A program made the position numbers and the translations under genes. Source: Caecitellus pseudoparvulus (Eukaryota > Protista > Bigyra: Bicosoecida). Taken from it: 64,000 nt of DNA. Each line of letters starts with the position of its first letter. The first letter of the stretch is position 1. The notes below the pieces were generated by a model. It was given only the letters and a program-made list of their open reading frames with translations. It made no database searches and was not told the DNA's origin. Shown here piece by piece: positions 17,991 through 33,206 of this stretch. The stretch lies in NCBI GenBank assembly GCA_965644315.1, contig CBFFRQ010000066.1, forward strand, positions 596,032 to 660,031, given 5' to 3'.

Positions 17991-20576
17991 ATGGTGCGTG
18001 GGTGTGGGCATGGTGCCGCGCTTCCGCCAGCCCTTGCGACAGAGCGTGTCGCACACACTGGCCAGCACACAACGCCCTGCCCCTCTCCCACACCACAGGC
18101 AGCAGCAACAGGACAAGTCATGGAGGGCGCTGCAGCACCCACTCCAGGCATCGACAGCACGCAGGCTGAGGTGGTGGCGGCATGCTTACGCAAGATGAAG
18201 TGCTTGCCGGGCAGTGTCATGGACCACGGCCCAGCACTGCGAGGACTGGCAGCCATTGGGCGTGGCGAGGCGCCTGATGCAGGCGACGCCCCATCGGTCA
18301 TGAGCCTGGTGGAGCTGGAGGCTGCACTGCGTGATGCGGGGAGTGCGCTGTTGGAGCAGGCTGGGCTGCTGGCGGGGCAGCGTGAGCGAGGTGGTGTGTG
18401 TGCTGCGCTGCAGTACCTGTCGTTCCGGTGCTTCTGTGCGGTGCATGTGCTGCATCAGGCGGCATCTGGTGTGGGTGCCGATGCAGTGCCGGAGGGCGAC
18501 GCACTGTGGGGCGCCATTGTGGGTGCTTGGGGCAGTGTACGGAGCGGTGTGAACGTGGAGGGTGCGCTGGCTGATCTGACGCGATGGTGGCAAGGCTTCG
18601 AGGTGGCGGATGTGGATGCGGCTAGTGAGGGTGGCCCCATCACACATAATGCTGGTGGCGAGGCAGCGATGGATGCGGCCCTGGCTGGCATGCGGCAGCA
18701 GGCTGAGTGGCTGCGAGGCGAGGCGGCAGGCGATCTGACGAGTGAGAGTGCTGCGGAGCACTTGGAGTGTGCTTCGAGTGCAGTGGAGGAGCTGCGTGAG
18801 CTGTTGGGGTGTGCACTGGTGATAAGTGGTCGGAAGGTGAAGGCTGTGAGTGGGATGGACTTGTTGGGCGGCTTGGAGTGCCTGAGCGGCAAGGGTGTGA
18901 GTGTGTACAGTGGGAGGGTTGAGATCGTGGATGAGGATGTTGATGGAGCTGGGGATCTGGAGCAGTGGGCAGTGACTGTGAAGTCGGGTGCGAGGGCGCT
19001 TGCTGCAAGTGTTGGTGCCGTGAAGCGTGTTGAAGCGGCTCGCATCGCCCATGGACTGCCGCGGATGGCGCAGACTCCACGCAGAGCAGCACTAGCACAC
19101 AGTATTTCCGCGGGCAGGGCTGATGAGCCGATTGGCGAGAGGAGTAGTGTCACAGTGCAGGTGCAGTGTGAGGCGGGGTGGCCGCTGAGGGTGTTCGTGG
19201 AGGATGAAGCGTGGGGCGATGTCGGGCTGGAGGTGAAGCTGCGCGTGGCTGTGAAGGTGCTGGGTGTGTGTGCTGTGGCGGAGGCGTGTGAAGTGGATGT
19301 GAGTGGCGTGAGTGTGGGGAGCTTTGTCGTGGTGGGTGTGGGAAGTGGCAGTGTGGGTGATCTGGTGGGGGCACTGGACGGAGGTGGGTGTGAGGTGGTG
19401 TTGAGTGCATGTGGTGGTGTGTGGGGCACAGGTGGATCTGGTGGTGGGAGCGGTGGTGAGGGTGTGTCGAGCGTGTTGCGTGAGGTGCTTGGTTTGGGAG
19501 GTGGCGCGTTGGGTGGCGATTCTAGCGTTGGGTCACTGTTCGTGGGCAGTGGTGAAGGTGGCGAACATTCACTGACAAGTGCGTTGGAGGTGTTGGCGCG
19601 AGGAGGGAGTGGTTGTTGCATGGGTGCATATGCAATGGCGTGTGTAGGAAGTGAGGGAGGAGTGGAGCGCCTAGGAGGTGTGGAGAGTGCTGTGCGGAGT
19701 GTGTTTGGTCGAGAGCAAGTAGCTGCTGCGACGCGTCGGACGCAGTCGGCTGGTGCAGCACGTCGGACACAGGCAGCCGAAGCTGCGGCAGCACCAGCTG
19801 CAGAGTCGGAGCCAGCCCCTGAGCAAGTGAAACTTAGTGAGGAGAATACCACTGCATTTGTGAGAGCGTGCAAGGATGGCAAACTTTCACGGGTGCGTAT
19901 GCTGCTGGCCCTCACTGGGGCGCGGGAAGTGGATGTACACGCGGCGGACAAGAATGGCCCTGAGGCCGCCTTCCGACTGGCATGCGCCAATGGCCGCAAA
20001 GACATCGTGTGCGAGCTGCTAAGTCTGACTGGGGCGCGGGAAGTGGATGTGCACGCAGCAGATAAGGATGGCCCTGAGGCCGCCTTCCGGTGGGCATGCC
20101 GCTGGGGCCACACAGACATCGTGCGCGAGCTGTTGGCCTTGACTGGGGCGCGGGAGGTGGATGTGCACGCGGCGGATAGGTGTGGACCTGAGGCTGCCTT
20201 CCGAGTGGCATGCTTCAACGGTAACACAGACATCGCGTGTGAGCTGCTGGCCCTGACTGGGGCGCGGGAGGTGGATGTGCACGCGGCGGATGAGGATGGA
20301 CCTGAGGCCGCCTTCCGAGTGGCATGCAAGGGTGGCCACACAGACATCGTGCGTGAGCTGCTGGGCCTGAACGGGGCACGAACAGTGGATGCGCGTGCGA
20401 GGGATAGGGATGGACCTGGGGCCGCCTTCAGAGAGGCATGCCGCTGGGGCCACTCAGACATCGTGCGTGAGCTGTTGGCCCTCACTGGCGATCGCAGGAT
20501 CCCATACAGCGTGCGGCAGCAAGCAGCCGAGTATGAAAGCTCTCAGAGACTTGATCTGATTCATCCCCTCAAATGA
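17991..20576 (+). CDS. Helical N-terminal domain + degenerate (pseudo)kinase + six 38-aa ankyrin-type repeats
   Basis: Open 861-codon frame, probably ATG|GTGCGT with intron 17994-18098. Repeats begin at 19848, 19962, 20076, 20190, 20304 and 20418 (114-nt period). Kinase-like remnants: VYSGRV, AVTVK, KLRVAVKV, SVLREVLG, AMAC..ERL. Confidence 0.8.
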   Translation: MVRGCGHGAALPPALATERVAHTGQHTTPCPSPTPQAAATGQVMEGAAAPTPGIDSTQAEVVAACLRKMKCLPGSVMDHGPALRGLAAIGRGEAPDAGDAPSVMSLVELEAALRDAGSALLEQAGLLAGQRERGGVCAALQYLSFRCFCAVHVLHQAASGVGADAVPEGDALWGAIVGAWGSVRSGVNVEGALADLTRWWQGFEVADVDAASEGGPITHNAGGEAAMDAALAGMRQQAEWLRGEAAGDLTSESAAEHLECASSAVEELRELLGCALVISGRKVKAVSGMDLLGGLECLSGKGVSVYSGRVEIVDEDVDGAGDLEQWAVTVKSGARALAASVGAVKRVEAARIAHGLPRMAQTPRRAALAHSISAGRADEPIGERSSVTVQVQCEAGWPLRVFVEDEAWGDVGLEVKLRVAVKVLGVCAVAEACEVDVSGVSVGSFVVVGVGSGSVGDLVGALDGGGCEVVLSACGGVWGTGGSGGGSGGEGVSSVLREVLGLGGGALGGDSSVGSLFVGSGEGGEHSLTSALEVLARGGSGCCMGAYAMACVGSEGGVERLGGVESAVRSVFGREQVAAATRRTQSAGAARRTQAAEAAAAPAAESEPAPEQVKLSEENTTAFVRACKDGKLSRVRMLLALTGAREVDVHAADKNGPEAAFRLACANGRKDIVCELLSLTGAREVDVHAADKDGPEAAFRWACRWGHTDIVRELLALTGAREVDVHAADRCGPEAAFRVACFNGNTDIACELLALTGAREVDVHAADEDGPEAAFRVACKGGHTDIVRELLGLNGARTVDARARDRDGPGAAFREACRWGHSDIVRELLALTGDRRIPYSVRQQAAEYESSQRLDLIHPLK
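19848..20500 (+). repeat. 114-nt coding tandem repeat (38-aa ankyrin variant EAAFRxACxxGHTDIVRELLALTGAREVDVHAADxxGP)
   Basis: Exact 114-nt spacing of conserved blocks, with high DNA identity between units. Confidence 0.95.

Positions 20577-33206: not shown

Follow-up and report, generated by a model that had tools for sequence, protein, structure and literature searches.

Two genes of Caecitellus pseudoparvulus from a massively expanded family of 38-residue ankyrin solenoids: a candidate recognition repertoire

Introduction

Why does the genome of a bicosoecid protist carry, among ordinary genes, two genes that share an unusual ankyrin repeat and have unrelated N-termini, and could such genes serve to recognize variable partners? 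The question is raised by the final 64 kb of contig C66 (CBFFRQ010000066.1, positions 596,032 to 660,031) in the assembly of Caecitellus pseudoparvulus (GCA_965644315.1; 30.6 Mb in 215 contigs). This whole stretch of 64,000 nt will be named hereafter the window, and the two genes gene 1 (type A) and gene 2 (type B). A first reading of the window, made from its letters alone (the sequence-only reading), had proposed that both are members of a diversifying repertoire of non-self receptors resembling those of fungi. No description of this ankyrin family was found in the literature. The analysis reported here places both genes in a lineage-specific, massively expanded family of probably cytosolic ankyrin solenoids, and we lean, with somewhat more belief than doubt, towards the view that this family is a recognition repertoire for variable ligands. 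The argument is carried mainly by the type A genes, in which five codons per repeat unit change faster than expected under neutrality.

Results

A common 38-residue unit in two otherwise different genes

Gene 1 is made up of the following parts (coordinates are those of the window):

17991-20576 (+): gene 1 (type A) open frame of 861 codons; probable coding sequence 18120-20576
18120-18815 (+): all-helical N-terminal domain of ~230 amino acids (aa); AlphaFold2 (AF2) model with a predicted local distance difference test (pLDDT) score of 83; 82 copies in the genome
18798-19664 (+): domain of predicted protein-kinase fold without catalytic motifs, i.e. a putative pseudokinase, by VIA-align and alignment inspection
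19848-19898 (+): N-cap half unit (TTAFVRACKDGKLSRVR)
19899-20468 (+): five full 38-aa ankyrin-like units (Pfam Ank_2, E = 1.1e-26)
20469-20576 (+): C-cap and tail A (ELLALTGDRRIPYSVRQQAAEYE...), the tail being kept in at least 25 paralogues
20740-21711 (-): UTP20_C-like open reading frame (ORF) of 323 aa, convergent partner of gene 1

The start of gene 1 is probably M44 of the open frame (position 18120), judging by the homologues P0003 and L031. Gene 2 is arranged as follows:

31083-33206 (+): gene 2 (type B) frame of 707 codons; coding sequence 31362-33206
31362-31559 (+): type B leader (degenerate unit) and N-cap; leader motif RWKAAC..EQA..LL
31560-31901 (+): three 38-aa units
31931-32294 (+): T-rich in-frame insert with two hydrophobic helices
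32358-33041 (+): six 38-aa units
33042-33206 (+): C-cap and tail B (..KDAVWTGTSTRPSRRDMLLLR..), kept in all type B genes read

Its start is probably position 31362, as paralogues align from residue 1 of that frame. The in-frame stretch just 5′ of this start (31280-31361; ..GKCGKCGKWSHHAM..) is conserved between gene 2 and its paralogues L080 and L078, which suggests a shared 5′ untranslated region or promoter element.

As the sequence-only reading had claimed, the two genes have a 38-aa (114-nt) repeat in common, with five units in gene 1 and nine in gene 2, as well as the capping end ELLALTG.R.IP, and their N-termini are unrelated, that is, a module of ~570 aa in gene 1 and a leader of ~55 aa, itself a degenerate unit, in gene 2. 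The dipeptides that it had listed for the AC-xx-G motif are likewise those present in the units of both genes. The spacing is strict: from one F-x-x-A-C motif to the next the distance is exactly 38 residues in every case in both genes, and Tandem Repeats Finder reported period-114 arrays at 19901-20488 in gene 1 (5.2 copies, 80% matches) and at 31616-31927 and 32349-33061 in gene 2 (71-76%). Such identities do not bear out the almost unchanging framework DNA that the sequence-only reading had also described. A direct-repeat search gave 62-64% identity between gene 1 and gene 2, and the synonymous difference between units at framework codons amounts to 0.32 for gene 1 and to 0.49 for gene 2.

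The units are recognized by Pfam as ankyrin repeats, with Ank_2, Ank_3, Ank, Ank_4 and Ank_5 all above cut-off (Ank_2 at E = 1.1e-26 and 2.1e-33 in the two genes), and HMMER matches to designed ankyrin repeat proteins (DARPins) and ankyrin-1/2 reached values down to 3.7e-22. The unit departs from the canonical 33-residue repeat with its TPLH motif, being strictly 38 aa long and having PEAAF in place of TPLH. Compared with the DARPin unit in the HMMER alignment, it has four extra residues after helix 2 and one before helix 1. The type A N-terminal module (N-module) is also carried by the metagenomic proteins P0001-P0004, P0007, P0011, P0013, P0014 and P0023, the more distant members of which mix units of 34-35 aa with units of 37-38 aa, indicating that the 38-aa unit arose through insertion of 3-4 residues (GPE) in the hairpin.

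Variable positions and selection

Over 250 units, the entropy was 3.0-3.3 bits at unit positions 18, 19, 27, 30 and 31 and mostly at or below ~2 bits elsewhere. Judging by the HMMER alignment to DARPins, these five positions would lie on one face. In this alignment, positions 18 and 19 are equivalent to DARPin positions 2 and 3, and positions 30 and 31 to DARPin positions 13 and 14. The proposal that variation falls on the surface positions randomized in DARPins is therefore upheld for four of the five sites, whereas the remaining one, position 27, corresponds to DARPin framework position 10, one helical turn before the 13/14 pair. Two other sites, equivalent to positions 5 and 33 of DARPins, vary little in the family (P21; mostly A16). 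The 250 units held 78 distinct xx dipeptides and 139 distinct triples at positions 27, 30 and 31. A small-alphabet code of the kind used by transcription activator-like effectors was ruled out, because 78 different xx dipeptides are too many for it.

Rates were obtained from unit pairs picked on a random half of the framework codons, and were taken from the other half and from the variable codons, which removes selection bias. In type A, the proportion of non-synonymous differences (pN) at the variable codons was 0.52-0.57 across divergence classes and that of synonymous differences (pS) 0.17-0.39, while the unselected framework half showed a pS of 0.16-0.35 and a pN of only 0.06-0.12. By divergence class, the ratio of variable pN to variable pS was 3.1, 2.1 and 1.4, dropping with saturation. 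The type A excess is put at a pN/pS of 2.1-3.2 for the variable codons against ~0.35 for the framework; it is seen in pairs with a variable-codon pN of 0.52-0.54 and pS of 0.17-0.26, in which the other framework half had a pS of 0.16-0.22 and a pN of 0.06-0.08. When the 250 units were pooled, variable pN over framework pS was 2.6 (95% interval 2.07-3.15, bootstrap over units), with a framework pN/pS of 0.37. Synonymous rates at the variable codons equal those of the framework, which rules out local hypermutation at these codons and argues that the excess is selective and not mutational. Codon bias is also unlikely to have inflated pN/pS, given that GC content at third codon positions of the units is only 0.63. 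With codon partitions in IQ-TREE, omega of the framework was 0.265; for the five-codon partition the log gave both omega and kappa as 1.000, and no estimate was drawn from it.

In type B, variable-codon pN ranged from 0.16 to 0.60 and pS from 0.18 to 0.67, with a pS of 0.25-0.56 and a pN of 0.08-0.24 in the unselected framework half. Variable pN over variable pS was 0.87-0.90, and variable pN over framework pS 0.65-1.06, or 0.87-1.14 in a larger type B sample. The set of variable positions is broader (17, 18, 20, 23, 27, 30 and 31), and single codons reach at most ~1.4 times the framework pS. Together, these counts support diversifying selection in the subfamily of gene 1, but none is demonstrated for that of gene 2, and the diversifying repertoire that had been proposed for both genes would apply to the former.

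A family of more than 200 genes

A genome-wide copy count had been named as a check on the repertoire idea, and it returned not two copies but a family of more than 200 ankyrin-repeat genes with 4 to more than 40 repeats (a catalogue based on search tallies and ~45 loci). With the gene 1 repeat region as query, at least 223 matches were found on dozens of contigs (out of 1078 first-look candidates), and none of the matches listed contained an internal stop. The first 232 aa of type A occur at 82 places in the genome, 81 of which lie in open frames without stops (142-1917 aa). With residues 1-83 of gene 2, counted from its ATG at 31362, as query for the type B leader, no fewer than 150 scored matches were obtained among 2288 candidates, most of them beginning at residues 1-10. 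The 38-aa period was strict in all 30 of the 30 loci examined, with 4-18 units per gene.

Type A genes have 4-21 units after the helical domain and the pseudokinase; the ~570-aa pre-repeat module is 70-84% identical with that of 24 other loci, and tail A follows the consensus RRIPDSVRQEAxKFExLKxLI. Type B genes are all-ankyrin, the leader included, and 250-1900 codons long, one frame having at least 40 units, and they are densely packed, with seven in 10 kb of contig C205 and seven in 10 kb of C54. Their basic tail B is strongly conserved (GHRAIPLQARLxAGEVAVQPAKDAVWxGTSTRQGRxAMLLLR), and a degenerate form of it is also found in distant relatives with 34-35-aa units. In the locus L021 and in the metagenomic protein P0007, the type A N-module is joined to a type B tail, indicating that N-modules and tail types recombine.

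Among 40 family-bearing contigs checked, 11 start with (CCCTAA)n, with family genes located 5-60 kb inward; many of the others are short, and about one-third of the close type A copies sit in the interior of large contigs. On C66 itself, gene 1 lies 43-46 kb and gene 2 ~31 kb from the contig end, at which no telomere repeat was found. Several contig pairs (C17/C106, C149/C199, C109/C116 and C32/C114) gave identical hits with identical scores and are probably uncollapsed duplicates or haplotigs. Within genes, framework pS averaged 0.315 versus 0.438 between loci, and for 63% of units the nearest unit sits in another locus. This pattern points to some local duplication or exchange of units without strong homogenization. 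The metagenomic protein P0003 was considered as a strain orthologue of gene 1 and rejected: at 80% identity, its N-module is no closer than those of paralogues in the genome (77-83%), and it is therefore uninformative on allelic variation.

A cassette of two convergent genes

The ORF that converges on gene 1 has only a weak match to Pfam UTP20_C, below cut-off. In no fewer than 16 loci (L002, L004, L005, L007, L017, L018, L022 and others), a copy of it that is 84-94% identical lies 3′ of the type A gene in convergent orientation, and ~360 bp of 5′ flank is also common to the cassette copies. A type A gene and its UTP20_C-like partner make up a cassette of ~5 kb, in agreement with the ~5-kb spacing of the tandem type A copies on contigs C71, C22, C21, C79, C72 and C142. 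Cleanly aligned pairs of the partner ORF yielded pN/pS values of 0.4-0.7; frameshifts have split several of its copies. By these comparisons, the UTP20_C-like ORF is a constant partner of type A genes and no stray housekeeping fragment. The sequence-only reading had seen in gene 1 a lone insertion among housekeeping genes; it is instead one copy of a two-gene cassette to which the adjoining 'UTP20' ORF belongs.

An orphan N-module with a predicted pseudokinase

Pfam gave no match to the type A N-module in 12 members, even at E = 1. The AF2 model of the module, built on a 12-sequence alignment, reached a pLDDT of 83 and a predicted template modelling score of 0.82. Residues ~227-515 of this model match kinase domains: VIA-align scored Z 13.7 to the horse MLKL pseudokinase (218 residues, root-mean-square deviation 3.6), with near-tied scores (Z 13.0-13.3) for FGFR3, ITK, BRAF, TGF-beta receptor 1 and JAK2 JH2, and the Foldseek list, although its scores were weak, was made up almost wholly of kinases. 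Inspection of the 12-sequence alignment, made without superposition, revealed no conserved beta3 (VAIK) Lys, HRD or DFG; the central domain of type A, as judged by predicted fold and alignment, is therefore most simply a pseudokinase.

The helical domain (residues 1-232), when folded alone, again had a pLDDT of 83 and contained nine helices. No convincing fold match to it was found in the PDB (best Z 7.0, covering one hairpin; Foldseek E >0.5) or in the ESM Atlas (template modelling score at most 0.35), and language-model features gave no match either. A profile search with the N-module against 1.84 billion representative proteins returned 19 proteins, all at E values of 1.5e-35 or lower, and nothing weaker. 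On this count the module is an orphan, confined to the present lineage and its metagenomic relatives.

Diverged copies of the N-module (33-60% identity) carry Sel1 repeats. In L077:375-6005 (-), the module is followed by about three ankyrin units and 31 Sel1 units of 36 aa with a DNA identity of 85%, and L075:18-5231 (+) combines it with ankyrin units and 18 Sel1 units. Since the same module is found on ankyrin and on Sel1 arrays, it pairs with different solenoids, as in receptors of the type of nucleotide-binding oligomerization domain (NOD)-like receptors (NLRs). Variation among the Sel1 units of L077 is concentrated at unit positions 2, 3, 15, 32 and 35.

The insert of gene 2

Located after the third unit, the insert of gene 2 disrupts neither the reading frame nor the repeat register (152 aa = 4 x 38). 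It contains two strongly hydrophobic segments of 19-23 residues, in which Kyte-Doolittle values of 19-mers reach 2.0-2.66, and is unique in the genome. Contigs from a second sample of this organism (X3) and from a marine metagenome (X5) also carry the insert, with 0-4 differences, and it is therefore no assembly artefact; no contig of X9 (organism B) or X14 (a metatranscriptome) covers the region. In one X9 contig, the carrier gene (97.7% identical) is joined to a unit similar to 32421-32491, and the distance separating the two is ~890 nt shorter, which suggests a structural difference between relatives, although such contigs can be chimeric across repeats. When the insert was compared in register with three units, one block showed an identity of 0.37 (background 0.27) and the other block no signal, a weak hint that it may have descended from three units. 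The insert may be a membrane hairpin, a diverged triple unit or an intron.

Other features of the window

GC content is high across the window (0.58-0.71), and open frames are long. Antisense frames over gene 1, some of them long (e.g. 18455-20485, 676 aa), appear to stem from base composition and the repeats and do not look like genes. GC skew is very strong (+0.35) across the N-module of gene 1, at 18001-20000. Three ordinary neighbour genes are present:

22306-25248: TMEM135-like protein
25268-29653 (-): SF3B3
29716-30759: mitochondrial carrier

The SF3B3 gene is 98% identical to a contig filed as 'Symbiodinium sp. KB8', the next best matches being at 60% and then 42%, and this public assembly contains contigs of the present organism or of a very close relative. 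On these matches the organism is a deeply branching marine protist, present as a contaminant in the KB8 assembly. One gene model of the KB8 assembly (P0029, 'YCF1 partial') combines an ABC transporter, a type A-like start and repeats of the 38-aa family, and looks like a fusion. Short contigs from a run labelled metatranscriptomic, and flagged 'probably DNA', match the carrier gene and the 3′ end of gene 2 at 94%.

Discussion

Beyond the anatomy, copy number, location, fold and selection pattern reported above, it is ligand binding, signalling and any immune role that we infer. The array of a type A protein would be the variable ligand-binding end of a helical domain-pseudokinase-ankyrin protein, in which selection would keep five surface residues per 38-aa unit diverse, unit number would shift via duplication and exchange, and the ~5-kb cassette would multiply in tandem, mostly near chromosome ends. 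The most likely role would be that of an intracellular innate-immunity-like or other non-self sensor, with ligand binding at the array being relayed to the pseudokinase/helical module. Type B would be an ankyrin-only relative with a basic tail; because its surface positions drift at an approximately neutral rate, it may work as an adaptor or a decoy, or provide a stock of units. A more specific version, which we advance tentatively, is that type A represents an undescribed class of protist innate-immune receptor, in which the helical domain and pseudokinase replace the nucleoside triphosphatase (NTPase) switch of NLRs, the diversity of ~80 genes is maintained within subtelomeric cassettes of two genes, hypervariable ankyrin or Sel1 arrays act as sensors, and the ligand frees the helical domain for an MLKL-like output, e.g. 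cell death.

The comparison with fungal NLR/HET receptors made by the sequence-only reading stands in part. Both consist of modular proteins whose repeat array forms the variable end, with positive selection on a few surface codons of each unit (here in type A only), differing repeat numbers and a signalling module that occurs with more than one kind of repeat (ANK or Sel1 here; ANK, TPR or WD40 in fungi). However, the predicted pseudokinase at the centre of type A takes the place of a NACHT/NB-ARC NTPase, leaving no NOD/STAND domain, and no HeLo, HET or PNP domain was recognized at the N-terminus. Nor do the repeats have the high identity expected of fungal ones, which is near 100%: unit DNA identity in the family is 71-85% (gene 1, 80%; gene 2, 71-76%), in line with the within-gene framework pS given above. 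With MLKL, type A shares a helical N-terminal domain followed by a kinase fold without catalytic motifs, and MLKL pseudokinases were the top structural match (Z 13.7), tied with tyrosine kinase-like (TKL) and tyrosine kinases, but its helical domain (~230 aa, nine helices) gave no match to the four-helix bundle, and MLKL has no C-terminal repeat sensor. An 'MLKL-like layout' therefore holds for the domain order helical-pseudokinase, and no match extends it to the four-helix bundle itself.

TKL proteins of the RIPK4/ANKK1 type have a kinase fold followed by ankyrin repeats, the same order as in type A, but these proteins are active kinases that exist as single copies, and their repeats are canonical 33-aa ones free of hypervariability. 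Like the present family, DARPins combine a constant framework with capping units and vary at positions 2, 3, 13 and 14; the family differs in being natural, in its 38-aa units, in the largely fixed positions 5/33 and in the extra variable site at framework position 10. Finally, a wider protist ankyrin family (P0005, P0015, P0016 and P0017), with 34-35-aa units and a W..GRR..LL.HR tail, shares with the present family the framework xACxxGHxxVVRELLALxGDRxVDVHA..AF and a tail B-like C-terminus, but its hairpins are shorter (no GPE insertion) and it lacks the type A N-module.

Several observations weigh against a recognition repertoire. None of the runs on record as RNA contains the locus. The units of genes 1 and 2 are old, as their framework pS values (0.32 and 0.49) indicate. 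Gene 2 taken alone gives a saturated signal, its type B subfamily shows no excess non-synonymous change, and pairwise counts on recombining repeats are not equivalent to a full site model. Because of the contig pairs with identical hits, copy counts may be somewhat inflated. On the side of the N-module, there was no MLKL or HeLo row among the structure matches of the helical domain, no Pfam hit to NACHT/NB-ARC in gene 1 or the 12 N-modules and no P-loop by inspection, and no known death or effector domain was found in gene 1.

Part of this evidence would suit a family of endogenous scaffolds or adaptors, i.e. substrate adaptors or regulators acting through conserved tails, whose surface is merely unconstrained and involves no non-self recognition. 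Type B variable codons evolve at an approximately neutral rate, tails A and B are strongly conserved and have the look of docking motifs, and adaptors that combine ankyrin repeats with a C-terminal box are well known. We nevertheless judge this explanation unlikely, since pN/pS at the five type A codons is above neutrality, the copy number, tandem arrays and telomere proximity would be unusual for housekeeping adaptors, and the tails fit no known box (none was found by Pfam in the whole proteins). The same selection pattern bears on the idea of a largely neutral or selfish expansion, in which ectopic subtelomeric recombination or a transposon-like mechanism would multiply the ~5-kb cassette and leave many copies without a function. 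A cassette with a UTP20_C-like gene fragment and conserved flanks, several partner ORFs being split, and the clustering of copies near telomeres are what such a process could leave behind; yet 81 of the 82 N-modules lie in stop-free frames, framework pN/pS is ~0.3-0.4 and the excess change is limited to five surface codons, so that we give it little credence.

Two other explanations keep recognition or binding but change the partner. Microbes that manipulate their hosts typically have large and variable ankyrin families, and the repertoire could consist of effectors that act on a second organism, be it host, prey or symbiont, as do the ankyrin effectors of poxviruses and intracellular bacteria; the co-occurrence of the organism with a Symbiodinium culture assembly (the KB8 SF3B3 at 98% and the same repeats in P0029) would fit. 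It is a distinctly improbable explanation in our view, as inspection revealed no signal peptide or export motif at either N-terminus, the organism is present in open marine metagenomes too, and the pseudokinase-helical module is no obvious delivery device. Within-species self/non-self recognition (mating, fusion or allorecognition), as opposed to pathogen defence, is suggested by the same signatures in fungal het genes, for which repeats of high internal conservation under positive selection have been described (PMC11761791). However, no cell fusion or sex is on record for the organism, and a few loci usually suffice for allorecognition, not 82 or more, which makes this very improbable.

The meaning of the family, if it is the recognition repertoire that we favour, lies in where such systems have been seen. 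To our knowledge, diversified repeat-based receptor repertoires come from animals, plants, fungi and bacteria, and hardly any from free-living marine protists. Type A would be such a repertoire on a different chassis, with a novel helical domain and a pseudokinase in place of the NOD, and, as it was found in just 19 of 1.84 billion proteins, its N-module is also a new domain family to characterize. Should the family be functional in defence, NLR-like immunity would have been invented independently here, and DARPin libraries would have a counterpart in nature.

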